64,000 bases of DNA from Macrostomum hystrix (GCA_950097015.1 CATNEN010000011.1:2294001-2358000), one strand, 5' to 3'. Positions 122 to 58,408 are shown, counted from the stretch's first letter. Numbers and translations: made by a program. Notes: generated by a model from the letters alone, not told the origin.

Positions 122-467
122 AGTAGTATGCAATTGGGGCTATCTGGGAAAACTTTTACGCAGTCTCCATGATCGCCAATCTGTTAACTTTATTATTCCC
201 GAAGAGATCAGGTAAAAAATGGTCCTCGCCTCTCCAAAAGTCTGTCTCTAAATTCTAAATTCTCCACTTCATTTTTAAAGTACATATTCCACAAAATGTA
301 CTTAAAATGGGTCAATATCTTTCCGAGTCGTATTCTTTGAGTAAACTATTCTAGGACAAACATTATTGCAGCCTCCATATTAACATTATTATTATTCCCA
401 AGGAGATCAGGAACAAGGGTACCTGCCTCGCAAAAAAGCTGTCTCTATTGTCTTAACTGATTATTCT
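122..467 (+). repeat. Left terminal inverted repeat of the Polinton relic
   Basis: Aligns by eye to the reverse complement of 9050-9395 with scattered mismatches (roughly 5-7%). Contains an internal direct repeat TTATTATTCCC..GAGATCAGG...CTGTCTCTA. Confidence 0.9.
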
Positions 468-619
468 GAGGAAATATTGGCCCAACGTTGATATCAATGT
501 CCGTAACATTAATCTAACAGTTAAGAGTCCCTGGTTTCATAAGTATGGAGTAACCATAAAGGACTATGACAGCTACTATAAAATTTTGCTGAAATCATTA
601 AGCAATTGTAATTTTTCTC

Positions 620-745
620 TCACATACTCTCAATGATCAACGTCAATACAAAATCTTCATTGTTGAAATCAATATTCCAACACCATCTTCCCTCTCAAAC
701 TGCAGCACAATCTCGTGAATCACCTTATTACTCAATACAACTCAT
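620..745 (-). pseudogene. Second copy of the penton (minor capsid) C-terminus in the left arm
   Basis: 470-745 is the reverse complement of ~8490-8767. Reads VVLSNKVIHEIVLQFEREDGVG/IDFNNEDFVLTLIIESM* with a 1-nt frameshift. Confidence 0.75.
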
Positions 746-915
746 CTATTATTCTTATCCGGTGTTGTATTGTTAACGACAATCGTTATTGCTCATGTGC
801 TATTTTGTTCTAGAATTATCTTCGCGGCAGTTCCACAGCAATCCAAATTCATGAGTTATATGTATTACACAATCTATAAGGAGGCAGCCTCCAACTTGTC
901 CTGTCGAATTAAACA

Positions 916-1139
916 ATGTCTCAAGAGTTGACTTCAGAGCTATCTGAGCGGTTACAATCAACGGAGGATATTAAAACCGTTTTTCGACGCATTCTGCAGG
1001 AGTTTGTGCCTGTCGAAAAGCAAGATGAATGTGTAAGGCCATGATTGATAAACTCTATTTACGCTATCCCCCATCGGCTACATCTGCAGCAGACTTTGCC
1101 GCCCGTCTTAAGGAAAAATTGAAAATCATTCTCGAATGA
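916..1139 (+). pseudogene. Small frameshifted ORF of unknown function inside the Polinton relic
   Basis: MSQELTSELSERLQSTEDIKTVFRRILQEFVPVEKQDECV/AMIDKLYLRYPPSATSAADFAARLKEKLKIILE*. Coding-like, one frameshift, no family recognised. Confidence 0.35.
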
Positions 1140-1184
1140 AAGTCACCTTCCTGCCACCACCACATGAAAAGCTTAGAAAGCATT

Positions 1185-1442
1185 CTACAGTCTGATGCTG
1201 ACTTCTGGCGCAACACGTGAACTTTTAGACTGCTTGCTAACTGTTCCGGCAGATTTTTTTACGTTGCTAGGCAACCATAATTCCCCATTGAGAGGCACAC
1301 GAGCAACCCCCCTATACCAAACTATTGATTTTTGGCGCGCGGTAAAAATTTCTCTAATGAATTTGGACAAGTATACAAACAGCTGTGACTGACTGTATAC
1401 GTTCATTTTTAATTGCTCAGCCAGTAGAGTTAAATCAAGCAC
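1185..1442 (-). CDS. Hypothetical 85-aa ORF inside the Polinton relic
   Basis: ORF track; non-repetitive and flanked by other viral-type remnants; no family recognised. Confidence 0.3.
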   Translation of the reverse strand: MLDLTLLAEQLKMNVYSQSQLFVYLSKFIREIFTARQKSIVWYRGVARVPLNGELWLPSNVKKSAGTVSKQSKSSRVAPEVSIRL

Positions 1443-1519
1443 TAAGCCTTCTCAACTCCCAGTTCTTTCAGAAGAATTCAAAGTTTTTTATTTGGCGCAT
1501 GCAATACAAAGCCTGCCCC

Positions 1520-1800
1520 ATCTCCCAAACAGCCACCAATCCCCAACCCAAAATTTGACTTACAAAAAATAACAGCTTTAACTGGCTTCCGCGCGAGCGA
1601 CTCCTTCCATGCCCACTCGACGCCCCCATATTGTCTAGCATTCTGAGCATTTCTTTATCCCAGCGAGTCTTCCCCTCTGGAGAATCCCTATACTTAATGT
1701 CATGCCACACAGACAGAGTCTAGCTCATTCACAGGCTCATGTCCAGGATTTGGATTATCGTTTTTATCTATAGCTGTATTTCAAGCGGATTACCGCCAGA
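1520..1800 (-). pseudogene. Parvovirus-type phospholipase A2 (PLA2X) remnant typical of Polintons/adintoviruses
   Basis: Joining frames gives GNPLEIQL/DKNDNPNPGHEPVNELDSVC/WHDIKYRDSPEGKTRWDKEMLRMLD.../WKESLARKPVKAVIFCKSNFGLG. This matches the N.LD..C..HDI.Y catalytic motif and the K.G.G tail. At least three frameshifts. Confidence 0.8.
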
Positions 1801-1812
1801 GCGTGGTAAAAA

Positions 1813-1943
1813 TTGACAGATCAGAAACTTCAAAAGCTCTACTACGACGACAAAGGATTCTTTGTAGGAAAAAAAATGCAGTCACCAAACTCGCAGAAGT
1901 AAGTAATGAATCAAAACAAACAGTTGAAAGTTGGCTCTCTAAG
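1813..1943 (+). pseudogene. Polinton-type integrase N-terminal remnant
   Basis: (L)TDQKLQKLYYDDKGFFVGK/NAVTKLAEVSNESKQTVESWLSK (frameshift in an A-run). Resembles the L.K.YY...G...G..A+.KL...V..WL.K start of Polinton/Ginger integrases. The DDE core is absent. Confidence 0.7.
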
Positions 1944-1948
1944 CCTAA

Positions 1949-2017
1949 GGAATCATGAACTTTGACCCTGCAGAAAAACCTATAGGCTCTCATTGGGTCT
2001 GTTGTGTAATTGATTAA
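1949..2017 (+). pseudogene. Adenain (adenoviral-type cysteine protease) remnant with catalytic His
   Basis: GIMNFDPAEKPIGSHWVCCVID* matches the GI+N+D....G.HWV motif. Fused directly to the integrase remnant. Confidence 0.7.
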
Positions 2018-2045
2018 AAAACTAATTTTTATATAAGAAATAGAA

Positions 2046-2431
2046 ATGAAACACGGAAACCCTTACATAACTGTAAGAGAAATCATTGGCTGTCTAGAGC
2101 ACTATGAAGATCTTAAACTAAACGGGTTCCATATGGTTATTCTCTTCCCATTCTGCTGGCTATCTGTACACGCCTCATTAGCGTTACATTAGAAAATGAA
2201 ATAAAGATAACAGAGAACACTGACTTTGAAATTTACTTGTCAAGTACTCGTCAATTAAAATCAATTATTAAGGTGAAGTTGCAGTTGGCTGACGTTGCCA
2301 AGTGGTACTTTAGTAATCCTTCAGTGTATCCGAGATCTCACCCCTTTGTTCAACGTCTAATACATCAAGTACTCTATGCACAAGGGATGGGATTTCCTAT
2401 AGACAACATTCCTCTTCACGGAACTGACTAG
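2046..2431 (+). pseudogene. Frameshifted ORF of unknown function inside the relic
   Basis: MKHGNPYITVREIIG... continues after a frameshift into the 2237-2431 ORF frame; no family recognised. Confidence 0.3.
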
Positions 2432-2434
2432 ATT

Positions 2435-2583
2435 AAGCCTAACTCGCTGCTCATAGAGGTCTTGAATGTTTTTAAACTCATCCTCTGAAATGAACTTGTC
2501 TTCAATCGCCTTTGAGATGTACCTGATTATTGAGTTCGCTTCATGACCTTCGCTTCATGACAAATCTGTTGCACGCCTCTTTG
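2435..2583 (-). pseudogene. Remnant of a conserved Polinton hypothetical ORF (LNSI...SKA..D..IS.EEF type)
   Basis: Minus frame reads NSIIRYISKAIEDKFISEDEFKNIQDLYEQRV, recalled as a recurrent Maverick accessory ORF motif. Confidence 0.5.
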
Positions 2584-3165
2584 GCTGAGTCTGAGTCTGA
2601 GTCTGAGTCTGAGTCTGAGGCTGAGGCTGAGTCTGAGGCTGAGTCTGAGGCTGAGTCTGAGTCTGAGGCTGAGTCTGAGGCTGAGGCTGTCTGAGGCTGT
2701 CTGAGTCTGAGGCTGAGGCTGAGTCTGAGGCTGAGTCTGAGGCTGAGTCTGAGTCTGAGTCTGAGTCTGAGGCTGAGTCTGAGTCTGAGTCTGAGTCTGA
2801 GTCTGAGGCTGAGTCTGAGGCTGAGGCTGAGTCTGAGGCTGAGTCTGAGTCTGAGGCTGAGGCTGAGTCTGAGGCTGAGTCTGAGGCTGAGTCTGAGTCT
2901 GAGGCTGAGGCTGAGGCTGAGGCTGAGTCTGAGGCTGAGTCTGAGTCTGAGTCTGAGTCTGAGTCTGAGGCTGAGGCTGAGTCTGAGGCTGAGTCTGAGG
3001 CTGAGTCTGAGGCTGAGTCTGAGGCTGAGTCTGAGTCTGAGTCTGAGTCTGAGTCTGAGTCTGAGTCTGAGTCTGAGGCTGAGTCTGAGTCTGAGGCTGA
3101 GTCTGAGTCTGAGTCTGAGGCTGAGTCTGAGTCTGAGTCTGAGTCTGAGGCTGAGTCTGAGGCTG
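2584..3165. repeat. (CTGAGT/CTGAGG)n hexamer microsatellite
   Basis: Directly visible; accounts for the SLRL/DSAS low-complexity part of the 2541-3314 ORF. Confidence 0.97.
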
Positions 3166-3731
3166 TCTTCTTTTCGCTTTCCCCAGTCGTTGTATATCCT
3201 ACTCAAATACTGGGTGTGTCTTGTTACGGTTTGTTTGATTCTTTCAATCTTTGTTCGCACTTTCGTTTGCAATGCTGTAAGATCTGATTCTGCTGCTGTG
3301 AGTCTCGAACTCAATCTCTCATGCAGGGTGGATGACCTAAGTTATAAATTTTGAACTTTAGTTGTATTTTCTGCTACTCTTCCTTCCACCAAGTTTGCTC
3401 GATTATCAGTGGCAGTTCTCAGAGTGGCGATGTCTGATCTCAGGGTGGTTATCGCTGCAACAAGAGTATCAAGTGTATCCCGATCGCGAACAAACTGTAA
3501 ATATAGTATGTCAATCTCTTCCTTCCGCTTTGCTACGTTCAACCGGAGGTATTCCATGTTTATTTGTTGTTGGTGTGCTGCCCGCTCTAGGGCTTTCAAG
3601 CGATCTTTAATGAGTTTGATTTCTGGAATTTTTTCGTCAACCTTTATATAGCGCCTGTCAAGGTATGAAACTTGAGCACTAGTGAGTGTGCTTCCACGAT
3701 CCAACGATTCACCTGCAAAATTAATATACAT
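3166..3731 (-). pseudogene. Coiled-coil (fibre/structural-like) Polinton ORF split by one in-frame TAA
   Basis: ORF 3342-3731 (MYINFAGESL...) and ORF 2541-3314 share one frame, separated by TAA plus 9 sense codons (LRSSTLHER). Heptad-like leucine spacing runs across the stop. Confidence 0.55.
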
Positions 3732-3792
3732 TTTAATAATTGATTTTAAATTACAGTTCTTTTTTCCTTATTGATCATCATAAACTGGTAAG

Positions 3793-3903
3793 GTTATGCC
3801 GTCCTCTTGTAAAATAATTTTCTATCTGCTTCTGTGGGCCTGTCATGCAATCAAGACAATCAAATGCTTTCTACCCTTTTCTAGCTCATCTGGTTGGGGT
3901 AGA
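3793..3903 (-). pseudogene. A32/FtsK-like packaging ATPase remnant (Walker B region)
   Basis: LPQPDELEKGRKHLIV/(D)CMTGPQKQIENYFTRGRHN. YFTRGRH.N after a hydrophobic-DD Walker B is characteristic of Polinton ATPases. Frameshift at Walker B. Confidence 0.78.
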
Positions 3904-3904
3904 A

Positions 3905-4129
3905 GTTTGGTCTTTGGAGTTGCTTACCATTGAGGTAGAGCTCCGGGACAGCCGAAGCGTCCCTGGGGTTCATGGAAAAGACTCCAATTTCGCATTTGTC
4001 CGGGTTGAGGCGGAGGAGCCATCTGCTGCTCCATTTGGCGACTCCGTCAAGCGCTGCCTGGAGTTTGCGCTGGGCTTCTCTGATGCTCCTGCCTTGGCTC
4101 CAGATGGCGAGTTCGTCCGCGAACAGGTG
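3905..4129 (-). mobile_element. Non-LTR retrotransposon (LINE) reverse-transcriptase fragment
   Basis: HLFADELAIWSQGRSIREAQRKLQAALDGVAKWSSRWLLRLNPDKCEIGVFS...PELYLNG. This is the (Y/F)ADD motif (here FADE) followed by the LQ..L..+..W...W.L.LN..KC signature. Confidence 0.85.
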
Positions 4130-5850
4130 CTGTTGTTGTGGCGGTTGTTGCTGTTGTTGTAGCAGTTGTTGCTGTTATTGTAGCGGTTGTTGCTGCTGCT
4201 GTGGCGGTTGTTGCTTTTGTTGTGGTGGTTGTTGCTGCTGTTGTAGCGGTTGTTGCTGTTATTGTTGCGGTTGTTGCTGCTGCTGTGGCGGTTGTTGCTG
4301 TTGTTGTTGCGGTTGTTGCTGCTGCTGTGGTGGTTGTTGCTGTTATTGTTGCGGTTGTTGCTGCTGCTGTGGCGGTTGTTGCTTTTGTTGTGGTGGTTGT
4401 TGCTGCTGTTGTAGCGGTTGTTGCTGTTATTGTTGCGGTTGTTGCTGCTGCTGTGGTGGTTGTTGCTGTTATTGTAGCGGTTGTTGCTGTTATTGTAGCG
4501 GTTGTTGCTGTTATTGTAGCGGTTGTTGCTGTTGTTGTAGCGGTTGTTGCTGTTGTTGTAGCGGTTGTTGCTGTTATTGTAGCGGTTGTTGCTGCTGCTG
4601 TGGCGGTTGTTGCTGTTATTGTAGCGGTTGTTGCTGCTGCTGTGGTGGTTGTTGCTGTTATTGTAGCGGTTGTTGCTGTTGTTGTAGCGGTTGTTGCTGT
4701 TGTTGTAGCGGTTGTTGCTGTTGTTGTGGCGGTTGTTGCTGTTGTTGTAGCGGTTGTTGCTGTTATTGTAGCGGTTGTTGCTGTTGTTGTGGCGGTTGTT
4801 GCTGTTATTGTAGCGGCTGTTGCTGCTGCTGTGGCGGTTGTTGCTGCTGCTGTAGCGGTTGTTGCTGTTGTTGTGGCGGTCGTTGCTGTTGTTGTGGCGG
4901 TTGTTGCTGCTGCTGTGGCGGTTGTTGCTGTTGTTGTTGCGGTTGTTGCTGCTGCTGTGGTGGTTGTTGCTGTTATTGTTGCGGTTGTTGCTGCTGCTGT
5001 GGCGGTTGTTGCTTTTGTTGTGGTGGTTGTTGCTGCTGTTGTAGCGGTTGTTGCTGTTGTTGTGGCGGTCGTTGCTGTTGTTGTGGCGGTTGTTGCTGCT
5101 GCTGTGGCGGTTGTTGCTGTTGTTGTTGCGGTTGTTGCTGCTGCTGTGGTGGTTGTTGCTGTTATTGTTGCGGTTGTTGCTGCTGCTGTGGCGGTTGTTG
5201 CTTTTGTTGTGGTGGTTGTTGCTGCTGTTGTAGCGGTTGTTGCTGTTGTTGTTGCGGTTGTTGCTGTTATTGTAGCGGTTGTTGCTGCTGCTGTGGTGGT
5301 TGTTGCTGTTATTGTAGCGGTTGTTGCTGTTGTTGTAGCGGTTGTTGCTGTTGTTGTAGCGGTTGTTGCTGTTGTTGTAGCGGTTGTTGCTGTTGTTGTA
5401 GCGGTTGTTGCTGTTGTTGTCGCGGTTGTTGCTGTTATTGTAGCGGTTGTTGCTGTTGTTGTGGCGGTTGTTGCTGTTATTGTAGCGGCTGTTGCTGCTG
5501 CTGTGGCGGTTGTTGCTGCTGCTGTAGCGGTTGTTGCTGTTGTTGTGGCGGTCGTTGCTGTTGTTGTGGCGGTTGTTGCTGTTATTGTGGCGGTTGTTGC
5601 TGCTGCTGTGGCGGTTGTTGCTGTTGTTGTGGCGGTTGTTGCTGCTGCTGTAGCGGTTGTTGCTGCTGCTGTAGCGGTTGTTGCTGCTGCTGTGGCGGTT
5701 GTTGCTGTTGTTGTGGCGGTTGTTGCTGCTGCTGTAGCGGTTGTTGCTGCTGCTGGGGCGTTTGTTGCTGTTGTTGTAGCGGTTGTTGCTGTTGTTGTAG
5801 CGGTTGTTGCTGTTGCTGTAGCGGTTGTTGCTGTTGTTTTTGTTCTGGGT
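4130..5850. repeat. 21-bp minisatellite built from GTT/GCT triplets (e.g. GCGGTTGTTGCTGTTGTTGTA)
   Basis: Directly visible; produces the poly-N, poly-T/A, poly-C/G and poly-V/A ORFs. Confidence 0.97.
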
Positions 5851-5915
5851 ATTCTGTTTAGATAATCTGGAAGATATTTCATGACTTCCATCTGATCTGG
5901 CAAACCGAACCATTG

Positions 5916-6516
5916 TTAAAAGTGCTTGTACTTTTTTAATCTAGTCAGGCTGACATCGTTGTCGTAAATTATTTTCAAAACTTCTGGGACCTTCAGTATT
6001 TCTATATCCCTAGCAAGAGCAAAACTCACTAGATCTCTGTAGTTCAGCTGCTCCTCGGAGATTTTCTCTTGGTTCTTAGTCATAAAAGTCTGTAAGGTTT
6101 CTGTGAAAAGTATGCTTTTAGTTTCTTGTGAGCCTTTGACAGACATACAGTTTTTATTTATGTCTAGTACAGTATAAGTGTTTTTTCTCCATTTACTAAT
6201 CCCGAAAACATATTTCCCATCATGTTCTGCTGGTCCAAAAATGTTATCCGTCACTTTTAGTTGTGGTTGTTGTGATTCTGGTGGTGGTGTTTATCCAAAG
6301 CCTTTTGCACCTGGGTTTTTGTATGTCGTCAATAGTTTCTTTGACTTGATCAATATTTTTCTTAGCTTTTCCATACCCGGGTTTATGAAACTCTGTGGCT
6401 GCTTGGACCAACTCATTGTAGGATTGTTGCTCCTTATTGATTAGCCCGGTAACTCTCTTTTTTGCTTGTGCTAGCTTCTCCAATTCAGATAATTGCTGTG
6501 CATTTTTTCTCTTCAT
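5916..6516 (-). pseudogene. Conserved Polinton hypothetical ORF, split into two overlapping ORFs
   Basis: ORFs 6244-6516 and 5916-6254 overlap by 11 nt. The N-part (AKKRV...EFHKP) and C-part (TDNIFG..EHDGKYVFG...NYRDLV) resemble a recurrent Maverick ORF. Confidence 0.45.
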
Positions 6517-6639
6517 TTCTTATTTTATTTTTTTAGTTAACGATCCACTTACACCAGTTTTCTACAAAATTAACAACCCTTTTTGAGTGATGACAGCACA
6601 ATCAAAGCGACTGAGGTAAGAGTTCCCAGTCAGGAAAAT

Positions 6640-6961
6640 CAGAGTCAAACTAATGAATCTATTGACTAAGTAAGTTCTAAGTAACTTAACTACACCTAGA
6701 GTGTTGCGGACTGGGGTGGACCACACTAGAATGGATGTGAAGCTAACCGGAATCGAGTTGTATTTGGAAGTCATTGAGCCAAAGACCGCACTAAAAGCAG
6801 ATTATCTCAAGGCAATAGAGAAGGACATTGATGTCGCCTACACGGCCTACATGTGTCGAGATGAGCGAAACGAAACTAGAACAAACATCTGCATTAAAGA
6901 GGGATCATGCAGCAATCCAAGGTATATTATTATTAACATGAGAAACCCAAATAGTATTATA
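6640..6961 (+). pseudogene. Polinton major capsid protein remnant, part 1
   Basis: DVKLTGIELYLEVIEP...IKEGSCSNPRYIIINMRNPNS. PRYIII preceded by a K+..I.L strand fits the double-jelly-roll MCP. In-frame stop at 6671. Confidence 0.65.
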
Positions 6962-7812
6962 CGAGGGGTGTTTCAAAAGTACGAGAATTTAGTCATGACT
7001 TGCACAGTGGATTCGCTGTCTTTTGTGGTCCAGGGTCAACTCACGCGGCACCCACTTGGCACAGACTCGCGACCAGTTTAATTCCTTTAAGATGCGGCTC
7101 ACAGAAGCAATGGAGATGCTACAGACCTCCTCAACTTCACGCAATGTGGCAGAAGGATTGGCGCAGAGGTAATCACGGACAATCTGTTTGCTGTTGTCAT
7201 CCGTTGACGAGCGGGGGCGTCCCGACCTGGGCGCGTCACCACATCCTGTAGCACCATCGCGGAACGCCTTGCAGTGAGCATAAACCCGCGCTTGCGATAG
7301 TGCCTGATCTCCAAATGCCTGGTTCAGGTCCCGAGCGATATCGCATGGCTTCTTTCCAAGTTGAACCAGACCAGCGATAAAATGCCTTCCTTCGATCCAA
7401 TTTCTGAATGATCTTTCGGTCGTTCCATAGTCTCACTTGAAAGCACTTTTCAGTCAGGTCTCTCAGTCAAGCATTTGCAATTTTGAGCAGCCCCATGCAG
7501 CTTAAAAAAACAAAAAATTCCGAGGCAACTTTGCCCATAAACAACAGAAACCGGAGACAGTAGCAGAAGCAGCTGAGTGCGTCAGCAGCATCATTTGCAG
7601 TTTTCACGTTCTAAGCAAATTCTCAGGTGTACAGACCACAGACTAAAATCGTAATTTTTAATCTCGAGGTCTGGACTTCAATGTGAGATTTCACTGGTGC
7701 ATGTAGACCGATAGAGTTGCAACTGAAGCTGTGTGCTGTCCATATTTGCAAAATTACAGGTTACAGGTAAAAATGTATGACTAAATTCTCGTTACTTTTG
7801 AAACACCCCTCG
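6962..7812 (-). mobile_element. Mariner (Tc1/mariner) internal-deletion derivative, 851 bp
   Basis: TIRs CGAGGGGTGTTTCAAAAGT(A)ACGAGAATTTAGTCAT at both ends, with TA duplications at 6960-61 and 7813-14. Minus strand encodes a transposase N-terminus (...DAPRSGRP...LREV...SVSRILKELNWSRVCAKWVPRELT) with a frameshift near the start and no DDD domain. Confidence 0.93.
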
Positions 7813-8070
7813 TACAATACATGCATGGAAACGTGCGGTCCATTCAGCATGAAATCAGTGATAATCTTTACCCTGCACTGCCACAAAATGGATATTTCAG
7901 TCAGAACAAGAGCAAATTTTATTACAGTTAGTTGGTCGACTTGGCTGTGAAAGAGAACAATGGAATTGCTAACATAGCTCTTCAATATGTAACTCTATAT
8001 ACGATATTTGGTGCTGATGTGTCTGCCAGACAAATGCCTACTGATAACAGCCCTGTGAATATCGTGACTA
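7813..8070 (+). pseudogene. Polinton major capsid protein remnant, part 2
   Basis: Removing the mariner plus one TA rejoins in frame: NPNSIIQYMHGNVRSIQHEISDNLYP...FSQNKSKFYYS*LVDL...YTIFGADVSARQ...SPVNIV, resembling the F.H.N.....YP / ID.S+Q....VD+ MCP C-terminal pattern. Confidence 0.7.
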
Positions 8071-8215
8071 ATTATATAATAATAATAATTGCAGCAGGGC
8101 TGCGGGCAGTGGCACATCATTTGGTGACGCTAGACCCGCAAAAAATTTGCGGCTGCGCCCCAAATAAATGTGGCCTCGCCGTGGAATCGAGCTCAGGGAC
8201 CGTGGTGCGAGAGGC
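8070..8215 (-). mobile_element. tRNA-derived SINE family A, internally deleted copy
   Basis: (TAA)n tail at left and shared body GGCACATCATTTGGTGACGCTAGACCCGC. Head reverse complement is GGTCCCTGAGCTCGATTCC (B-box-like). Related to copies at ~28615, 30500, 44835 and 51965. Confidence 0.65.
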
Positions 8216-8615
8216 TAAATGGGATTTCTTCTGAGATTCCAGAAGAAAATCCATAAGGCGGAAGCACAGACTGCATCTCCTTCACCGGGGGCTGTTTCGA
8301 GGACCCAGCTAAGCGGTCTGTTCTTAGCGCCCAATATCGCAGACATTGTAAAGGGTTTGAATATTCTAATCAGAAGTAATCTCAGTCTTGATTGGCTATT
8401 CAAGGGAAAGCGAACGAATATTTTGTACAACATCTCAAACTCTGTTGCTGGAGGACAGATGCTGGTAGAGAAACCAAACCCAGTGAAAAGAGTTGTGCTA
8501 AGTAATAATTGGGGATTCACGAGATTGTGCTGCAGTTTGAGACGGAAGATGGTGTTGGAATATTGATTTCAACAATGAAGAGTTTGTATTGACGTTGATC
8601 ATTGAGAGTATGTGA
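8216..8615 (+). pseudogene. Polinton penton (minor capsid) remnant
   Basis: MGF...APNIADIVKGLNILIRSNLSLDWLFKGKRTNILYNISNSVAGGQMLVEKPNPVKRVVLSNN/IHEIVLQFETEDGVG/IDFNNEEFVLTLIIESM*. Fits the penton C-terminal GYKI.E.P....I..I.L.I.D.DG..IDF.GE pattern. Two frameshifts. Confidence 0.78.
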
Positions 8616-9049
8616 GAGAAAAATTACAATTGCTTAATGATTTCAACAAAATTTTATAGTAGCTGTCATAGTCCTTTATGGTTACTCCATACTTATGAAA
8701 CCAGGGACTCTTAACTGTTAGATTAATGTTACGGACATTGATATCAACGTTGGGCCAATATTTACTCATCTAGTTTGCATCGGTACTTACTCTTGTAATT
8801 GGGCTCGTGCTTGGCATAGTGAGATCCAGGAGAGAAGATTGGAAACATTTTCATTGAGAATTAATTTTTTTCGGAGGATGAGCATCCTAGGTTTGGGATC
8901 TTGAGTTTGGAATTGGGATCTTGGCGCTAATTTGATTGTCTTGATGCACTTTTTGGGCTGTGAGGCTCTTATCAGGAATATGGAGACAATTTTTTTGTAC
9001 AAGACTGATCTGGAATAGGCTGCGAAAATTTTTGTCCCAACTGATCTGG

Positions 9050-9395
9050 AATAATCAGTTAAGACTATAGAGACAGCTTTTTTGCGAGGCAGGTACCCCT
9101 TCACCTGATCTCCTTGGGAATAATAATAATGTTAATATGGAGGCTGCGATAATGTTTGTCCTAGAATAGTTTACTCAAAGAATACAACTCAGAAAGATAG
9201 TGACCCATTTTAAGTACATTTTGTGGAATATGTACTTCAAAAATGAAGTGGAGAATTTAGAATTTAGAGACAGACTTTTGGAAAGGCGAGGACCCTTATT
9301 TCCCTGATCTCTTTAGGGAATAATAAAGTTTACAGATTGGGGATCATGGAGACTGCGTAAACGTTTGTCCCAGATAGCCCCAATTGCATACTACT
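9050..9395 (-). repeat. Right terminal inverted repeat of the Polinton relic
   Basis: Reverse complement of 122-467; ends in ACTACT. Confidence 0.9.
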
Positions 9396-10130
9396 TTCCA
9401 AGAAATATCACTCATTTAAACACTCGTCTTTCCTAGAAATACCACTCTCTTGAACACTCGTCTTTCCAAGAAATATCATTCACTCGCAAACTCGTCTTTC
9501 CAAGAAATATCATTCACTCGCAAACTCGTCTTTCCAAGAAATATCATTCACTCGCAAACTCGTCTTTCCAAGAAATATCATTCACTCGCAAACTCGTCTT
9601 TCCAAGAAATATCACTCTCTTGAACACTCGTCTTTCCAAGAAATATCACTCTCTTGATCACTCGTCTTTCCAAGAAATATCACTCTCTTGATCACTCGTC
9701 TTACCAAGAAATATCACTCTCTTGAACACTCGTCTTTCCAAGAAATATCACTCTCTTGAACACTCGTCTTTCCAAAAAATATCACTCTTTTAAACAGTCG
9801 ACTTTCCAAGAAATATCACTCACTAGCAAACTCGTCTTTCCAAGAAATATCACTCGCTCTCGCACACTCGTCTTTCCCAGAAATATCACTCTCTCGAACA
9901 TTCGTTTTTCAAGAAATATCACACTTTAACACACATCTTTCCAAGAAATTTCTCTCTATCGAACATACATTTTTCCAAGAAATATCACACTTGAACACTC
10001 TTTTTCCCAGAAATATCACTCTCTCGAACATTCGCCTTTCCAAGAAATATCACTCTCAACACTCTTCTTTCCAAGAAATATCACTCTCAAACACTCTTCT
10101 TTCCAAGAAATTTCTCTCTATCTCGAACAC
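9396..10130 (+). repeat. ~32-33 bp satellite TTTCCAAGAAATATCACTCTCTTGAACACTCGTC, decaying rightwards
   Basis: About 20 visible tandem units starting immediately after the ACTACT terminus. Confidence 0.95.
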
Positions 10131-11119
10131 TCATAGTTCTACGAATCACAACTTTCGACGAAATGGGATTTCTCATTAAACTTCAGTCACAAAAAACTTA
10201 GCACATCAACATCCATTTTCTCCAAAAAGCAATTCAAATTTGAAATTTTCTGGAACCAAGGGCATAGATAATTATTTCTCAGAAAGCCGGTCACTGGAAA
10301 TCTGTTTAAACTGTCGAATCCACGCATGCGTCAGCGCCCAAAAATGGAATGTGAAAAGATATATTTTTTCGATTTTTGGTAAACGAGCAGTTTTGTAGTT
10401 CAAGTGCAGTCGAGTGGGTAATTTCGTAGATTACCTGCACAGATCCTGGTTGCTGGGCGTCTGTAAACAAATGCAGAATTTTATGTTTTTATATCAAAAA
10501 ATGGATTCCTAAAATTTAGAAATTTCCTGCTATCACCTACACTCGCGCACTTTACGATTTTTATTTAGGTTAGGCTAGAAAAGTTTAACCTGTTTTAATC
10601 AAGTTACGAGTATACTGCGATTCTAGTCTGCCGAACATGCCTGCTTGACCAACTTTTAGCTAGGTCTGCGGTTGCAACCTAGATTATTTCCTAATGTTCA
10701 GATGGTGTCTTAACGCACGAATTCCTTGCATGATCTTCAGATGTTTCAGATTTTACCTGCTAATTCCTAGCCTTATTCCTAGCCTTATTTAGATGAACGT
10801 AAATGTATAGAATGTGGCTATTGTCCCCCTGGGAATGACCCATTTATTTCAAATGTGTACTAATTATGCTACCTTAAATGATTAGTTTGTTTTTTCCTTT
10901 TGTAGCGGAAGTCAACGAAGGTAGATTTTTATATAGTATTTGTGCTTTTCTGAATCCTTTTGATTTATTTTACATTTGAACTGGTGCCAATTCGTTTCAA
11001 TCCATGATTTACTCGTAAAAAAAACAAATTTTAGGTTAAGTTAGATTTGTTTGCCGCTGGTGTCGGAAAGTTTTCTTTGATAATCTATTAGATCTGTCTT
11101 TGATTGAAGATCTGAATAA

Positions 11120-12370
11120 ATATTTGAGAATCCAGAATCTAAGAATCCCAATTCGCTGAATTCCAACTCCGAGACTCTCAAAGTCCCCATTTTAAGAATC
11201 CAAATTCTAAGAATCCAAATTCTAAGAATCTAACTTCCAAGAATCCAATTTCCAAGAATCCAATTTCCAAGAATCCAAATTCCAAGAATCCAATTTCCAA
11301 GAATCCAAATTCCAAGAATCCAAATTCCAAGAATCCAATTTCCAAGAATCCAATTTCCAAGAATCCAATTTCCAAGAATCCAAATTCCAAGAATCCAAAT
11401 TCCAAGAATCCAATTTCCAAGAATCCGAATTCTAAGAATCCAAAGTCCAAGAATACATATTCAAAAAATCCCCAATTCAAAGAATCCCAATTCAAAGAAT
11501 CCCAATTCAAAGAATCCCATTTCAAAGAATCCCAATTCAAAGAATCCCAATTCAAAGAATCCCAATTTCAAGAATCGAATTCCAAAGAATCCGAATTCTA
11601 AGAATCCAAAGTCCAAGAAAACATACTCAAAGAATCCCAATTCAAAGAATCCCAGTTCAAAGAATCCCAATTCAAAGAATCCCAATTCAAAGAATCCCAA
11701 TTCAAAGAATCCCAATTCAAAGAATCCCAATTCAAAGAATCCCAGTTCAAAGAATCCCAATTCAAAGAATCCCAGTTCAAAGAATCCCAATTCAAAGAAT
11801 CCAAGTTCAAAGAATCCCAATTCAAAGAATCCCAATTCAAAGAATCCAAGTTCAAAGAATCCCAATTCAAAGAATCCCAATTCAAAGAATCCAAGTTCAA
11901 AGAATCCCAATTCAAAGAATCCCAATTCAAAGAATCCAAGTTCAAAGAATCCCAATTCAAAGAATCCCAATTCAAAGAATCCCAATTCAAAGAATCCCAA
12001 TTCAAAGAATCCAAGTTCAAAGAATCCCAATTCAAAGAATCCCAATTCAAAGAATCCCAATTCAAAGAATCCCAATTCAAAGAATCCCAATTCAAAGAAT
12101 CCCAATTCAAAGAATTCCAATTCAAAGAATCCCAATTCAAAGAATCCAAATTCTTAGAATCCCAATTCAAAGAATCCCAATTCTTAGAATCCCAATTCTT
12201 AGAATCCCAATTCTTAGAATCCCAATTCTTAGAATCCCAATTCTAAGAATCCCAATTCAAATAATCCCAATTCTAAGAACCCCAATTCTTAGAATCCAAA
12301 TTCTTAGAATCCCAAATTCTTAAAATTCTTATTCTAAGAATCCCGATTCTAAGCAACCCAATAGAAGAAT
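11120..12370. repeat. 15-bp minisatellite AAGAATCCCAATTC(A/T)
   Basis: Directly visible; source of the ELGFF/NWDSL ORFs. Confidence 0.97.
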
Positions 12371-12859
12371 CAATATTTTAAGAACTCAGATTCTAATAGT
12401 CACAGTTTTTTATCCTTCAAATTCAGTAATCTGAATGGCAGTTTCAGTTAATTGGCTTTCCTTGCTTTTATCCGTATTAAAATACAATACGTCACAAAAA
12501 CGTCTCCTAGATGTGGTTTTATCTCTTATCGAACGAGACACATAAAGTGTGAATAAAGTTCTGTTGTTAAGCTTTAGTTCGTGACTTTTTGTGAATTTGA
12601 AATACGTGTATCAAATGAGTCCACTGATCTATTGATTTTCAAACCACTGTTGGTAGAAGTTCCGTGCAACAGCTGTGCAACTTCTTAAAGTCGTGATAAA
12701 CTAGAATTTCAAAATAGCTTGGTTGAAGCAATCTTTCAAACATTCATTTTTTCGAAATCCCTAAAAAATCCTTTCTTTTAAATCTCGATTCTTCAAAATC
12801 CTAATTTTCCTAAAACCCAGAAGTTGAGCTAACTGAAGCACATTTCTAAGAATCCTTAA

Positions 12860-13444
<585 letters not shown>

Positions 13445-13559: not shown

Positions 13560-16500
13560 ATTCTCTGCAAGTATCCATGTAGGATAGGATTTCTCTTTCT
13601 AGGTGGGATGGGATTTCTCTTCCTAGGTGGGATGGGATTTCTCTTTCTAGGTGGGATGGGATTTCTCTTTCTAGGTGGGATGGGATTTCTCTTTCTAGGT
13701 GGGATGGGATTTCTCTTTCTAGGTGGGATGGGATTTCTCTTTCTAGGTGGGATGGGATTTCTCTTTCTAGGTGGGATGGGATTTCTCTGTCTAGGTGGGA
13801 TGGGATTTCTCTTTCTAGGTGGGATGAGATTTCTCTTTCTAGGTGGGATGGGATTTCTCTTTCTAGGTGGGATGGGATTTCTCTTTCTAGGTGGGATGGG
13901 ATTTCTCTTTCTAGGTGGGATGGGATTTCTCTTTCTAGGTGGGATGAGATTTCTCTGTCTAGGTGGGATGGGATTTCTCTTTCTAGGTGGGATGAGATTT
14001 CTCTGTCTAGGTGGGATGGGATTTCTCTTTCTAGGTGGGATGAGATTTTTCTGTCTAGGTGGGATGGGATTTCTCTTTCTAGGTGGGATGGGATTTCTCT
14101 GTCTAGGTGGGATGGGATTTCTCTTTCTAGGTGGGATGGGATTTCTCTTTCTAGGTGGGATGGGATTTCTCTGTCTAGGTGGGATGGGATTTCTCTTTCT
14201 AGGTGGGATGGGATTTCTCTTTCTAGGTGGGATGGGATTTCTCTTTCTAGGTGGGATGAGATTTCTCTGTCTAGGTGGGATGGGATTTCTCTTTCTAGGT
14301 GGGATGAGATTTCTCTGTCTAGATGGGATGGGATTTCTCTGTCTAGGTGGGATGGGATTTCTCTTTCTAGGTGGGATGAGATTTCTCTGTCTAGGTGGGA
14401 TGAGATTTCTCTGTCTAGGTGGGATGGGATTTCTCTTTCTAGGTGGGATGGGATTTCTCTTTCTAGGTGGGATGGGATTTCTCTTTCTAGGTGGGATGAG
14501 ATTTCTCTGTCTAGGTGGGATGGGATTTCTCTTTCTAGGTGGGATGAGATTTCTCTGTCTAGGTGGGATGAGATTTCTCTGTCTAGGTGGGATGAGATTT
14601 CTCTGTCTAGGTGGGATGGGATTTCTCTTTCTAGGTGGGATGAGATTTCTCTGTCTAGGTGGGATGGGATTTCTCTTTCTAGGTGGGATGAGATTTCTCT
14701 GTCTAGGTGGGATGGGATTTCTCTTTCTAGGTGGGATGAGATTTCTCTGTCTAGGTGGGATGGGATTTCTCTTTCTAGGTGGGATGAGATTTCTCTGTCT
14801 AGGTGGGATGGGATTTCTCTTTCTAGGTGGGATGGGATTTCTCTGTCTAGGTGGGATGGGATTTCTCTTTCTAGGTGGGATGAGATTTCTCTGTCTAGGT
14901 GGGATGGGATTTCTCTGTCTAGGTGGGATGGGATTTCTCTTTCTAGGTGGGCTGAGATTTCTCTGTCTAGGTGGGATGGGATTTCTCTTTCTAGGTGGGA
15001 TGGGATTTCTCTTTCTAGGTGGGATGGGATTTCTCTTTCTAGGTGGGATGGGATTTGTCTGTCTAGATGGGATGGGATTTGTCTGTCTAGGTGGGATGGA
15101 ATTTCTCTTTCTAGGTGGGATGGGATTTGTCTGTCTAGATGGGATGGGATTTCTCTGTCTAGGTGGGATGGGATTTCTCTTTCTAGGTGGGATGGGATTT
15201 CTCTTTCTAGATGGGATGGGATTTGTCTGTCTAGATGGGATGGGATTTCTCTGTCTAGGTGGGATGGGATTTCTCTTTCTAGGTGGGATGGGATTTCTCT
15301 TTCTAGGTGGGATGGGATTTGTCTGTCTAGATGGGATGGGATTTGTCTGTCTAGGTGGGATGGAATTTCTCTTTCTAGGTGGGATGGGATTTGTCTGTCT
15401 AGATGGGATGGGATTTCTCTGTCTAGGTGGGATGGGATTTCTCTTTCTAGGTGGGATGAGATTTCTCTTTCTAGGTGGGATGGGATTTCTCTGTCTAGGT
15501 GGGATGGGATTTCTCTTTCTAGGTGGGATGAGATTTCTCTGTCTAGGTGGGATGAGATTTCTCTGTCTAGGTGGGATGGGATTTCTCTTTCTAGGTGGGA
15601 TGAGATTTCTCTGTCTAGGTGGGATGGGATTTCTCTTTCTAGGTGGGATGAGATTTCTCTGTCTAGGTGGGATGGGATTTCTCTTTCTAGGTGGGATGAG
15701 ATTTCTCTGTCTAGGTGGGATGGGATTTCTCTGTCTAGGTGGGATGGGATTTCTCTTTCTAGGTGGGATGAGATTTCTCTGTCTAGGTGGGATGGGATTT
15801 CTCTTTCTAGGTGGGATGGGATTTCTCTTTCTAGGTAGGATAGGATTTCTCTGTCTAGATGGGATGGGATTTCTCTGTCTAGGTGGGATGGGATTTCTCT
15901 TTCTAGGTGGGATGGGATTTCTCTTTCTAGGTGGGATGGGATTTCTCTGTCTAGATGGGATGGGATTTCTCTTTCTAGGTGGGATGGGATTTCTCTTTCT
16001 AGGTGGGATGGGATTTGTCTGTCTAGGTGGGATGAGATTTCTCTGTCTAGGTGGGATGGGATTTCTCTTTCTAGGTGGGATGGGATTTCTCTTTCTAGGT
16101 GGGATGGGATTTCTCTGTCTAGGTGGGATGGGATTTCTCTTTCTAGGTGGGATGGGATTTCTCTTTCTAGGTGGGATGGGATTTCTCTTTCTAGGTGGGA
16201 TGAGATTTCTCTGTCTAGGTGGGATGGGATTTCTCTTTCTAGGTGGGATGAGATTTCTCTGTCTAGATGGGATGGGATTTCTCTGTCTAGGTGGGATGAG
16301 ATTTCTCTTTCTAGGTGGGATGAGATTTCTCTGTCTAGGTGGGATGAGATTTCTCTGTCTAGGTGGGATGGGATTTCTCTTTCTAGGTGGGATGGGATTT
16401 CTCTTTCTAGGTGGGATGGGATTTCTCTTTCTAGGTGGGATGAGATTTCTCTGTCTAGGTGGGATGGGATTTCTCTTTCTAGGTGGGATGAGATTTCTCT

Positions 16501-18720
16501 GTCTAGGTGGGATGAGATTTCTCTGTCTAGGTGGGATGAGATTTCTCTGTCTAGGTGGGATGGGATTTCTCTTTCTAGGTGGGATGAGATTTCTCTGTCT
16601 AGGTGGGATGGGATTTCTCTTTCTAGGTGGGATGAGATTTCTCTGTCTAGGTGGGATGGGATTTCTCTTTCTAGGTGGGATGAGATTTCTCTGTCTAGGT
16701 GGGATGGGATTTCTCTTTCTAGGTGGGATGAGATTTCTCTGTCTAGGTGGGATGGGATTTCTCTTTCTAGGTGGGATGGGATTTCTCTGTCTAGGTGGGA
16801 TGGGATTTCTCTTTCTAGGTGGGATGAGATTTCTCTGTCTAGGTGGGATGGGATTTCTCTGTCTAGGTGGGATGGGATTTCTCTTTCTAGGTGGGATGAG
16901 ATTTCTCTGTCTAGGTGGGATGGGATTTCTCTTTCTAGGTGGGATGAGATTTCTCTTTCTAGGTGGGATGGGATTTCTCTTTCTAGGTGGGATGGGATTT
17001 GTCTGTCTAGATGGGATGGGATTTGTCTGTCTAGGTGGGATGGAATTTCTCTTTCTAGGTGGGATGGGATTTGTCTGTCTAGATGGGATGGGATTTCTCT
17101 GTCTAGGTGGGATGGGATTTCTCTTTCTAGGTGGGATGGGATTTCTCTTTCTAGATGGGATGGGATTTGTCTGTCTAGATGGGATGGGATTTCTCTGTCT
17201 AGGTGGGATGGGATTTCTCTTTCTAGGTGGGATGGGATTTCTCTTTCTAGGTGGGATGGGATTTGTCTGTCTAGATGGGATGGGATTTGTCTGTCTAGGT
17301 GGGATGGAATTTCTCTTTCTAGGTGGGATGGGATTTGTCTGTCTAGATGGGATGGGATTTCTCTGTCTAGGTGGGATGGGATTTCTCTTTCTAGGTGGGA
17401 TGAGATTTCTCTTTCTTGGTGGGATGGGATTTCTCTGTCTAGGTGGGATGGGATTTCTCTTTCTAGGTGGGATGAGATTTCTCTGTCTAGGTGGGATGAG
17501 ATTTCTCTGTCTAGGTGGGATGGGATTTCTCTTTCTAGGTGGGATGAGATTTCTCTGTCTAGGTGGGATGGGATTTCTCTTTCTAGGTGGGATGAGATTT
17601 CTCTGTCTAGGTGGGATGGGATTTCTCTTTCTAGGTGGGATGAGATTTCTCTGTCTAGGTGGGATGGGATTTCTCTGTCTAGGTGGGATGGGATTTCTCT
17701 TTCTAGGTGGGATGAGATTTCTCTGTCTAGGTGGGATGGGATTTCTCTTTCTAGGTGGGATGGGATTTCTCTTTCTAGGTAGGATAGGATTTCTCTGTCT
17801 AGATGCGATGGGATTTCTCTTTCTAGGTGGGATGGGATTTCTCTTTCTAGGTGGGATGGGATTTCTCTTTCTAGGTGGGATGGGATTTCTCTGTCTAGAT
17901 GGGATGGGATTTCTCTTTCTAGGTGGGATGGGATTTCTCTTTCTAGGTGGGATGGGATTTGTCTGTCTAGGTGGGATGAGATTTCTCTGTCTAGGTGGGA
18001 TGGGATTTCTCTTTCTAGGTGGGATGGGATTTCTCTTTCTAGGTGGGATGGGATTTCTCTGTCTAGGTGGGATGGGATTTCTCTTTCTAGGTGGGATGAG
18101 ATTTCTCTGTCTAGGTGGGATGGGATTTCTCTGTCTAGATGGGATGGGATTTCTCTTTCTAGGTGGGATGGGATTTCTCTTTCTAGATGGGATGAGATTT
18201 CTCTTTCTAGGTGGGATGGGATTTGTCTGTCTAGGTGGGATGGGATTTCTCTGTCTAGATGGGATGGGATTTCTCTTTCTAGGTGGGATGGGATTTCTCT
18301 TTCTAGATGGGATGGGATTTCTTTTTCTAGATGGGATGGGATTTCTCTTTCTAGGTGGGATGGGATTTCTCTGTCTAGGTGGGATGGGATTTCTCTTTCT
18401 AGGTGGGATGGGATTTCTCTGTCTAGATGGGATGGGATTTCTCTTTCTAGGTGGGATGGGATTTGTCTGTCTAAATGGGATGGGATTTCTCTTTCTAGGT
18501 GGGATGGGATTTGTCTGTCTAGGTGGGATGGAATTTCTCTTTCTAGGTGGGATGGGATTTGTCTGTCTAGATGGGATGGGATTTCTCTTTCTAGGTGGGA
18601 TGGGATTTCTCAATCAAGGAAGGATGGGATTTTACCATCCAGGTAAGACGCGATTTGACTTTGCAGTTAGAATGGGATTTCTCTATCCAGGTGAGATGGG
18701 ATTTTTTAAACTACTAAATG
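13560..18720 (+). repeat. 24-bp minisatellite GTGGGATGGGATTTCTCTTTCTAG (~210 units) filling the TMEM184 last intron
   Basis: Directly visible; source of the 1719-aa and 1726-aa ORFs. Confidence 0.98.
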
Positions 18721-22167: not shown

Positions 22168-23391
22168 ATGCTAGCTCATCTGGCTTCACAAAACGAGTGT
22201 CTCCTTCGTGAAGGCCAATCAAATTTGAGCACAGTTAACGGTAGCCGATCACCAGGCTCTAACGGCATGATTCCCTATCTGTGGATCACCTGCATTCTGG
22301 CCACACTCAACGCTGTCACCAACGGCTTCTCGCTAATTGTATTTGTTCTGGATCGCAAAAATGTAAGCATGCGTCGCCTGCTACTCCTCCTGTCGCTATC
22401 TGAGACTGTGCTCAACATCTGCATGTCTGTGAACCTATGCGTGATGCTCAGTGTTGGAAACGAGCATCAGTTTTCCACCTATCCAAACCGAATCACGGTA
22501 TTGTTCTTCCTGTCATTCATGCTGTTCAATGCTTACATCATGATTCGCAACTGGTGCCTCGTCATGATCGCCGGCAGTCGCTGCGAGGTGGTCAGGAATC
22601 CTTTGAGTACCCGCAGCGGCCAGCTGTTCAGTCCCAGCCGGACTCTGTACGGCTACTCGGCTCTGAGTCTGGTGAGTCTGGCTGTGTACACACCGCGGCT
22701 GTTTGAATTTACCTGGATCGTCTACCAGTTGCCATGCAATGCCAGTCTGCATAACGATTCTAAACATGTTGAATACCTGCTGACAACACGACTGCATCAC
22801 ATCCTTGATGCCATCCCAGCCTACGGTTACTACAAGACCATGGTTCTGTACCCGCTGCAAACCATTCTGCCAATATTTCTGATTGCTCTGCTCAGCTTTC
22901 TCATTGTGGTCACGCTGCGTAGGCGAGAGATGCAACAGTCGCTGCCACAACAGGGTCAGGCAGCAGCCAGGACCAGTCAGGACGCCGCCACCAAGACTGT
23001 CATGGTGCTGATGCTGGCCTTCATTGTATGCGAGCTGCCTACCTTCATCTTCTTTGTGCTCAATAGAACCGTTTTCAAAGCACTGTCCAATTATGAGCAG
23101 GTGAGAACTCACACGACATTCATTGGCAACATTCTGGTTTGCCTAGATAGCTTCAGCAACTTCATCATCTACAGCAGCACCAGCAACAGCTTTCGTGATA
23201 CTGTTCGGCGAATATTTCGCCTACAAGACGGCGCAAAGGCTAGACGCTTGGTAGCGGCTGGACACCAGAACTATGTGCCCCTGAGGGCCTGCGACCCTCG
23301 CCTCAGCAGGGGATATGGTGTTGATGCACCGCTGGCTGCTGCTGCTGCTGCTGAGGTAGCATGTGCACCTGTGGAATATGATAGAATCTGA
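22168..23391 (+). CDS. Intronless class A peptide GPCR (FMRFamide-receptor/Srw-like), 407 aa
   Basis: Seven hydrophobic segments. TM3 RNWCLVMIAGSRC (DRY variant), TM4 YTPRLFEF, TM6 F.VCELP and TM7 LDSFSNFIIY are typical of protostome FMRFamide-R-like receptors. Confidence 0.9.
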   Translation: MLAHLASQNECLLREGQSNLSTVNGSRSPGSNGMIPYLWITCILATLNAVTNGFSLIVFVLDRKNVSMRRLLLLLSLSETVLNICMSVNLCVMLSVGNEHQFSTYPNRITVLFFLSFMLFNAYIMIRNWCLVMIAGSRCEVVRNPLSTRSGQLFSPSRTLYGYSALSLVSLAVYTPRLFEFTWIVYQLPCNASLHNDSKHVEYLLTTRLHHILDAIPAYGYYKTMVLYPLQTILPIFLIALLSFLIVVTLRRREMQQSLPQQGQAAARTSQDAATKTVMVLMLAFIVCELPTFIFFVLNRTVFKALSNYEQVRTHTTFIGNILVCLDSFSNFIIYSSTSNSFRDTVRRIFRLQDGAKARRLVAAGHQNYVPLRACDPRLSRGYGVDAPLAAAAAAEVACAPVEYDRI

Positions 23392-32531: not shown

Positions 32532-32989
32532 CATAGTCAATATATATTAGCTAGTGAATTGAAGCCATTGTGGGTGAAACTAATGAGCTAGTTTCATTGC
32601 AGCGACACACTTCTTCTTCTCAATGAGATGTTTCTGCTTTCAGCAACACCTGTCGATGAAAGTAAATGAGTTGCCGAATTGGACAGTAATCTGGCGATGT
32701 AATTATTGCTCTGCGCGTCTCCTGTTTGCTGGTTAATAGAAAAGAAACATGTCCTGATCAGCCTCATTTGACCAGTGCAGCAGCTGCTTGGGAATATATA
32801 TTTCAAATAACTCACCTGCTAAACTGCAATACTATAATACTGCTCCACAATCACATGATGTATTTTATGAGTATGAGCAGTATTTTATTGTCAAGTCACT
32901 CAATTCCCAAGTTGAAAAAAGAACAGCGACAAGACCATTTATACTTTTCTTGAGTTTCTACTCTTTGCGTAACTTTCCTCCCGTTATCT

Positions 32990-34388
32990 CTCCCAAATCT
33001 CCCATCTCCCAAATCCTAAATCTCCCAAATCCTAAATCTCCCAAATCCCAAATCTCCAAAATCCTAAATCTCCCAAATCCTAAATCTCCCAAATCCTAAA
33101 TCTCCCAAATCCTAAATCTCCCAAATCCTAAATCTCTCAAATCCTAAATCTCCCAAATCCTAAATCTCCCAAATCCTAAATCTCCCAAACCTCCCATTTC
33201 CCAAATCTCCCATCTCCCAAATCTCCCATCTCCCAAATCTCCCATCTCCCAAATCTCCCATCTCCCAAATCTCCCATGTCCCGAATCCTAAATCTCCCAA
33301 ATCCTAAATCTCCCAAATCCTACATCTCCCAAATCTCTCATCTCCCAAATCTCCCATCTCGCAAACCTCCCATTTCCCAAATCTCCCATCTCCCAAATCT
33401 TCCATCTCCCAAACCTCCCATTTCCCAAATCTCCAATCTCCCAAACCTCCCATTTCCCAAATCTCCTATCTCCCAAATCTCCCATCTCCCAAATCTTCCA
33501 TCTCCCAAACCTCCCATTTCCCAAATCTCCAATCTCCCAAACCTCCCATTTCCCAAATCTCCAATCTCCCAAACCTCCCATCTCCCAAATCTTCCATCTC
33601 CCAAATCTCCCATCTCCTAAATCTCCAATCTCAAAATCCTAAATCTCCCAAATCTCTTATCTCCTAAATCTCCAATCTCCCAATCCTAAATCTCCCAAAT
33701 CTCCAATCTCCCAAACCTCCCATTTCCCAAATCTCCCATCTCCCAAATCTTCCATCTCCCAAATCTCCCATTTCCCAAATCTCCCATCTCCCAAATCTTC
33801 CATCTCCCAAATCTCTCATCTCCCAAATCTCCCATCTCGCAAACCTCCCATCTCCCAAACCTCCCATCTCGCAAATCTCCCATCTCCCAAATCTTCCATC
33901 TCCCAAATCTCCCATCTCCCAAATCTTCCATCTCCCAAATCTCCCATCTCCCAAATCTCCCATCTCCCAAATCTTCCATCTCCCAAATCTCCCATCTCCC
34001 AAATCTCCCATCTCCCAAATCTTCCATCTCCCAAATCTCCCATCTCCCAAATCTTCCATCTCACAAATCTCCCATCTCCCAAATCTCCCATCTCCCAAAT
34101 CTCCCATCTCCCAAATCTTCCATCTCCCAAATCTCCCATCTCCCAAATCTCCCATCTCCCAAATCTTCCATCTCCCAAATCTCCCATCTCCCAAATCTTC
34201 CATCTCACAAATCTCCCATCTCCCAAATCTCCCATCTCGCAAACCTCCCATCTCCCAAACCTCCCATCTCGCAAATCTCCCATCTCCCAAATCTTCCATC
34301 TCCCAAATCTTCCATCTCCCAAATCTCCCATCTCCCAAATCTCCCATCTCCCAAATCTCCCATCTCCCAAATCTCCCATCTCCCATCT
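32990..34388 (-). repeat. C-rich TCTCCCAAATC(CTAAA/TCCCA) ~16-bp arrays, opposite polarity to 31150-32210
   Basis: Directly visible. Confidence 0.95.
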
Positions 34389-46375: not shown

Positions 46376-46476
46376 AAAAAACGCGGAGCTTTTCTGAGCA
46401 GTTACGGACGGAGAGATCAGACGAAACAGTTCAAAACTAGTAATTACTGGCGGCAAGATCAAACAAAGGCACTAAC

Positions 46477-53005: not shown

Positions 53006-53057
53006 TCACTGGCCAACTTGGTAAGATCTAAGGTCAAATAAAAGTCACGTGACTCAC

Positions 53058-58380: not shown

Positions 58381-58408
58381 TAACTGAAACAATTAGACTC
58401 CCACTCAC

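Follow-up and report, generated by a model that had tools for sequence, protein, structure and literature searches.

Polintons (Mavericks), as published, are 13-25 kb long and end in terminal inverted repeats (TIRs) of 100-1500 bp. Krupovic et al. (PMC4028283) counted elements shorter than 10 kb as incomplete; in the same account PX is the penton of Polintons, and the gene for the major capsid protein (MCP), or else one intervening gene, should adjoin it (PMC4028283). PLA2-like genes and coiled-coil or fibre-like genes have been described in adintoviruses (PMC8502044). The subject here is a region of about 10 kb at the left edge of a 64,000-nucleotide stretch of DNA from Macrostomum hystrix (GCA_950097015.1, CATNEN010000011.1:2294001-2358000), which was analyzed as a whole and is called the window throughout; all positions are counted from its first letter. 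A first-pass annotation, made by motif spotting, had taken positions 122-9395 for a shattered Polinton/adintovirus genome, and an origin of this type is supported by the remnant of a gene with a penton fold and by long inverted ends of Polinton size. We conclude that the region is probably an old Polinton/Maverick-type (adintovirus-like) double-stranded DNA virus insertion that has lost internal sequence and is decaying where it landed, probably in a TMEM184-type gene's intron.

Penton remnant and inverted ends

The sole viral gene demonstrated in the region is the remnant of a penton gene (minor capsid, single jelly-roll) at 8183-8612 on the plus strand, where the first-pass annotation had also seen one. 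The homology to the family comes from the window's own sequence: the open reading frame (ORF) 8219-8563 matched a 153-aa relative (P0001) in a word search with 78% identity (E 1e-35), a tblastn search with P0002, the closest full-length relative, covered residues 159-278 of 278 (E 2e-28), and alignment of the window ORF to the penton family profile with hhalign gave a probability of 98.6% and E 7e-16. About 120 C-terminal codons of about 278 are kept (~43%), the N-terminal ~57% of the gene being gone, and what is kept is spread over three frames by two frameshifts, with no in-frame stops within the matched stretches (tblastn).

The penton fold, for its part, was established on the relative P0002, for which an AlphaFold (AF2) model was built from an alignment of 16 family members (A1) and reached a predicted local distance difference test (pLDDT) score of 81.7. 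In Foldseek the model aligned along its full length with the mavirus penton (6g41; E 9e-12, template modeling score ~0.5) and also with adenovirus penton bases (E 1e-7 to 1e-6), the Sputnik chain 3j26_N, adomavirus LO5, a "putative penton" of a MELD virus and adintovirus proteins; taken over all the penton matches (mavirus, adenovirus, Sputnik, adomavirus and MELD virus), the best had E values of 1e-11 to 1e-14. The family itself (~260-280 aa) is small and unannotated. An exhaustive search with P0001 recovered 22 proteins among 1.84 billion representatives, most of them 240-280 aa long and matching via their C-terminal ~100 residues, and all of these relatives come from metagenome or read-archive assemblies. 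No Pfam domain was found in the penton-family proteins, and a search of PDB chains with the family's sequence profile returned nothing, so that fold comparison alone reveals what the family is; it can therefore serve as a marker for annotating this lineage. Among the relatives P0002-P0021, the contig that carries one is 52.6 kb long and those that carry another reach 10.4 kb; the complete gene content of the lineage could be visible there.

The region is bracketed by a long inverted repeat (2-743 against 8490-9515, 95-98% identical), which self-comparison divides into an outer pair of arms (2-466 and 9049-9515, 95.5% identity) and an inner pair (467-743 and 8490-8768, 96.4%). The unique part of the left arm occupies 124-804, its identity to the right arm being high to 743 and weaker from there to ~804, and the unique part of the right arm, delimited by self-comparison with the left arm, occupies 8490-9393. 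Each is followed on its outer side by a tandem array of 34-bp units, as delimited by Tandem Repeats Finder (TRF): at 1-123 on the left, where at least 3.6 units are present before the array is truncated by the window start, and at 9394-10132 on the right, where there are 21.9 units, the outward ones more degenerate. The left array is an inverted copy of the right one, in register unit for unit (the pair 2-152 and 9365-9515, I3, is 99% complementary). The region thus has terminal inverted repeats made of ~0.7 kb of unique sequence plus the 34-bp arrays, 95-99% identical, and the arms are separated by ~7.7 kb.

The 3' end of the penton gene falls inside the right arm, and for this reason the left arm holds an inverted partial copy of it on the minus strand (outer bounds 623-804; tblastn with P0001). 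This copy has one frameshift and two in-frame stops, and its frameshift stands at the same protein position as one of the two in the right copy.

The ends of the element are not where they had been placed. The first-pass annotation described intact AGTAGT termini, and AGTAGT is indeed present at 122-127, with its complement at 9390-9395; it is not the true end of the element, however, because the inverted repeat runs through it on both sides and into the mirrored 34-bp arrays. Insertion of an element into a pre-existing satellite would leave a directly oriented flanking array, whereas these arrays are inverted, and they must belong to the repeat itself. The six bases outside the two AGTAGT sites (TTGGAA and TTCCAA) are reverse complements of each other and form no direct duplication, so that comparison of these flanking bases gives no 5-8 bp target-site duplication at AGTAGT. 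The motif was accordingly rejected as the element end, which also counts against functional ends having been preserved there. The true ends therefore lie farther out, the left one beyond the window, as the left array continues past the window start; any target-site duplication at the true ends is for the same reason outside what the window shows.

Two further features of the arms may be recorded. The right arm carries ~280 bp (8769-9048) that are missing from the left arm and that include part of a 37-bp tandem repeat (8971-9053), and each arm holds two diverged copies (79%) of a ~60-bp subrepeat (190-250 and 389-447 in the left arm).

Reading frames and secondary DNA of the interior

The Pfam scan of the region covered 45 queries, each an ORF or a piece, with matches up to E<=10 admitted for short motif pieces. 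Every query ended at a frameshift or stop and was thus a single-frame piece, and the only domains returned were RVT_1 and a mariner-type helix-turn-helix (HTH). The scanned ORFs of at least 40 aa between the arms gave no match to pPolB/DNA_pol_B_2 or another polymerase, though very short or heavily frameshifted scraps may escape such a scan; this agrees with the first-pass annotation, in which no pPolB had been recognized. ORFs of the same length likewise gave no match to the rve integrase core, to Peptidase_C5, to Pox_A32 or the A32-type ATPase, or to capsid families. A phmmer search of the PDB with nine pieces and one profile returned nothing, and an exact sequence look-up of ten window ORFs (seven of them from the element) found none in the protein collection.

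Several genes that had been named by motif accordingly stand as leads, that is, as resemblance in frame translations. These are a PLA2-like lead of two short pieces in two frames on the minus strand (1471-1780), an integrase-N-terminus-like lead of two short pieces in two frames on the plus strand (1810-1955), and an adenain-type protease-like lead of a single 22-codon piece on the plus strand (1949-2014). The last two abut, as had been described, and they do so as motif resemblances. None of the three gave a relevant Pfam match even at E<=10, and the PLA2-like and protease-like pieces were also blank in the PDB search with phmmer. The calls of an ATPase and an MCP, which concern longer frames, are leads of the same kind.

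Three longer frames survive in the region (~1.2 kb, ~0.6 kb and ~0.55 kb; 0.5-1.2 kb), and we therefore rejected the description of the whole region as a mosaic of 70-400 bp remnants; it fits, at best, the left part (~800-2430), whereas the right part holds these frames. The minus-strand coiled-coil ORF that had been proposed is present at 2360-3731, with one in-frame stop and weak coiled-coil Pfam matches (best E 0.0014), its 3' part being occupied by a (CTGAGT)n microsatellite. A second frame, also on the minus strand (5919-6516), represents a gene of ~200 codons with one inferred frameshift that ends beside a minisatellite, and it is probably the one that had been called an ATPase with a Walker B motif. 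No relatives of it were found: its 124-aa part (5919-6290) was blank in Pfam, the PDB and the word search, so that there is no evidence of an ATPase in this frame, and a single-sequence AF2 model of the same part reached a pLDDT of 39.8, which is too low for a fold search.

The third frame, on the plus strand at 6731-8077, is the one that had been called the MCP. It opens with a methionine and is broken by one nested mariner-like element (~0.85 kb) and one in-frame stop. On the 3' side it is truncated, stopping where a short interspersed repeat starts, so that only the N-terminal part of the gene (~180 codons of its own) is left. Pfam, the PDB and the word search gave no match for this frame, the word search with its N-terminal piece having been run under a length filter and covering relatives up to that length. 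The frame neighbors the penton remnant, where an MCP or one intervening gene would be expected, and this is an agreement of position only. We also considered whether it could be the missing N-terminus of the penton, and rejected this on its alignment to the penton profile (hhalign probability <1%).

Of the ~9.3 kb that separate the two AGTAGT sites, about 3.7 kb is secondary DNA. It includes the 581-bp (CTGAGT)n hexanucleotide microsatellite at 2585-3165 (TRF), a 5'-truncated, non-viral fragment of the reverse transcriptase (RT) domain of a non-long-terminal-repeat (non-LTR) retrotransposon on the minus strand at 3884-4174 (RVT_1 E 6.1e-5, profile positions 146-192 of 205) and, adjoining this fragment, a ~1.7-kb minisatellite of 81.5 copies of a 21-bp unit at 4128-5838 (TRF), which has a strong GC and AT skew. 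The nested mariner-like element has inverted ends of ~38 bp and flanking TA, and its HTH matched HTH_32 (E 3.7e-6) and the Mos1-type HTH_48 (E 0.009), both under the Pfam cut-offs; Pfam found no catalytic domain in it, so this copy appears to be internally deleted. The short interspersed repeat just upstream of the penton has partial copies elsewhere in the window, at 51965-52027 (90%) and 45648-45700 (83%), and is SINE- or MITE-like (resembling short interspersed nuclear elements or miniature inverted-repeat transposable elements), without assignment to a class.

The microsatellite, the minisatellite, the RT fragment and the mariner-like element had gone unmentioned in the first-pass annotation, as had the left-arm copy of the penton. 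Motif spotting had thus arrived at the right kind of element, while overstating the number of recognizable genes and misplacing the ends.

Origin of the locus

In the reading that we favor and consider probable, a Polinton-like double-stranded DNA virus would have integrated into the germline of an animal, with ends formed by long inverted repeats in which a 34-bp array is followed by ~0.7 kb of unique sequence reaching into the 3' end of the penton gene. Little of that virus's interior would have survived: its polymerase, integrase core, packaging ATPase and protease, and a recognizable major capsid gene, would all have gone, leaving the penton tail, three broken reading frames and very short motif-like scraps. 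The non-LTR fragment, the mariner-like element, the short interspersed repeat and the two expanded satellites would be later additions, and the element would now be without a function of its own, decaying neutrally.

We place the locus with Polinton/Maverick-type elements because it has, in an animal host, both a penton gene and inverted ends in the Polinton size range. Strong internal loss had been proposed before and is borne out: the region measures ~10 kb with its ~3.7 kb of secondary DNA, far under 13-25 kb, and the core domains are undetectable. A single insertion decaying in place accumulates just such nested transposons, expanded satellites, frameshifts and stops, and we infer that the element integrated once, lost sequence by deletion where it stood and lies in an intron. 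Invertebrate genomes commonly contain endogenous Polinton/adintovirus remnants, of which the region is an ordinary decayed example.

Several observations weigh against this reading. One virus hallmark gene has been demonstrated, and of that one only the C-terminal 43%; no relatives could be detected for the three longer frames, which might therefore be non-viral; and the true ends, with any target-site duplication, are beyond view, the left array passing the window start. Finally, the frameshift common to both arms is unexpected under a simple model of an intact virus that integrated and later decayed, unless the arms exchanged sequence after integration. Since both arms carry the same penton frameshift, the last copying of one from the other probably came after the gene had broken; they have since diverged by 4-5%.

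The alternative that survives best takes up this last point, and we consider it unlikely. It holds that the element was already a deleted, non-autonomous genome, comparable to a defective-interfering one, when it last replicated, having kept its inverted ends, needing a complete relative for its proteins, and perhaps being mobilized in trans and belonging to a family that shared its deletion junctions. Protein-primed linear genomes are known to rebuild one end by copying the other. An inverted repeat that reaches into a gene is what would be expected of such rebuilding, and the frameshift common to the left- and right-arm penton copies, in arms that have since diverged by 4-5%, fits as well; exchange between the arms after integration, on the other hand, explains the common frameshift equally well. 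Further, self-comparison found no second copy in the 64-kb window, the look-up of the ten window ORFs gave no exact match, and the termini that had been claimed as functional are neither repeat ends nor flanked by a target-site duplication.

A more specific version of this history, which we would rate as quite unlikely, is that a defective Polinton-like genome was still replicating at the time of integration and that its left end had been rebuilt by copying the right end, frameshifted penton tail and 34-bp array together. If true, the locus would have captured in the germline how a protein-primed animal virus repairs its ends and forms defective genomes, and it might belong to a helper-dependent family. 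The combination of tandem arrays, unique sequence running into a capsid gene and a frameshift present in both arms is a descriptive clue, of modest value, to how ends are maintained or rebuilt in such linear genomes.

It is similarly improbable that the region is not one element at all. It could then be due either to the end-fragments of two separate Polinton-like insertions lying in opposite orientation or to a host inverted duplication that included one such insertion, in each case around unrelated DNA. The interior between ~800 and ~8100 has no demonstrated viral relative apart from the penton tail, which would suit this idea, and both arms carry the same, penton-proximal end; terminal inverted repeats, however, are by definition alike at both ends, so this second observation is identical to what a single element would give. 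The arms are moreover mirrored in register down to the units of the arrays, and compact, divergently arranged ORFs together with motif-level leads of the expected kinds suit a viral interior better than a host intron.

That the locus was co-opted as a source of PIWI-interacting or small interfering RNAs (piRNA/siRNA) against related active viruses is very improbable: read-through transcription of long inverted arms might in principle yield double-stranded RNA, but here the arms stand ~7.7 kb apart, and the decay, with its stops, frameshifts and nested insertions, looks neutral.

Host setting and comparison with known systems

The window is AT-rich animal DNA, unlike that of humans, and dense in mini- and microsatellites. 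Judging by its genes, the host is an animal, as the window contains a G-protein-coupled receptor (GPCR) of the Srw type, immunoglobulin (Ig) and fibronectin type III (FN3) exons and an exon of TMEM184 type. This last exon lies outside the element, at 12860-13444 on the plus strand (Solute_trans_a E 1.3e-37). The first-pass annotation had suggested that the element may lie in a TMEM184 intron, and such a position is plausible, because the exon covers only positions 158-266 of the 267 of the profile and no earlier TMEM184 exon is evident upstream in the window, the stretch 10133-12860 included.

Directly downstream of the TMEM184-type exon is a 5.1-kb array of 24/48/72-bp units (13582-18704, 94% matches), which is open in several frames and so yields spurious ORFs of 1700 aa. 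Farther along, an intact single-exon ORF of 407 aa on the plus strand (22168-23391) encodes the GPCR (7TM_GPCR_Srw E 1e-14, 7tm_1 E 2e-7), and its exact sequence is absent from the protein collection. Between 32989 and 38553 a 16-bp and a 24-bp satellite alternate three times (32989-34385, 34901-35660, 35896-36496, 36564-36980, 37216-37832 and 37900-38553), in a pattern that resembles a higher-order repeat of two satellites. The FN3 and Ig exons, all on the minus strand (44126-44689, 46462-46986 and 53057-54277) and with DSCAM-like matches, are probably parts of one large cell-adhesion gene with satellite-filled introns. Glycosyltransferase exons follow on the same strand at 58332-58817 and 59662-60069 (Gly_transf_sug DXD region, E 6e-8), and a 20-bp satellite (57148-58367) abuts the downstream one. 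Rfam and tRNA scans of the window returned nothing.

Among the systems to which the locus can be compared, defective-interfering genomes of the adenovirus type and non-autonomous DNA transposons keep their inverted ends around a heavily deleted interior, as is the case here. In the present locus one end has, in addition, apparently been copied from the other after gene damage, which is a further likeness to defective-interfering genomes; unlike what would be expected of these, the window contains no second copy or shared junctions and no evidence of helper dependence. In the Tlr elements of Tetrahymena, short tandem repeats form part of the long inverted ends, a resemblance to the ends described above. 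These elements are Polinton-related and, like Polintons, encode a penton and an MCP (PMC4028283). They differ in having a ciliate host and in possessing a helicase instead of pPolB.

At the level of the single gene, the closest counterparts are the mavirus penton (PDB 6g41/6g42) and the adenovirus penton base, which the predicted fold of P0002 matches over its whole length, although sequence identity to them is only 8-13% and the window keeps only the C-terminal 43%.

From the Polintons as published the locus departs in several ways: it has no detectable pPolB, rve, A32/FtsK-type ATPase, adenain domain or double jelly-roll MCP, it measures ~10 kb in place of 13-25 kb, and of this a third is secondary DNA, no target-site duplication was seen at its AGTAGT sites, and its penton belongs to a family with only 22 relatives and no Pfam model. 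With Polintons/Mavericks and adintoviruses alike, however, it shares long TIRs, the unique part of which falls within 100-1500 bp, a single-jelly-roll penton and an animal host, and its leads, which are by motif only, are of kinds described in adintoviruses in particular, PLA2-like and coiled-coil or fibre-like.

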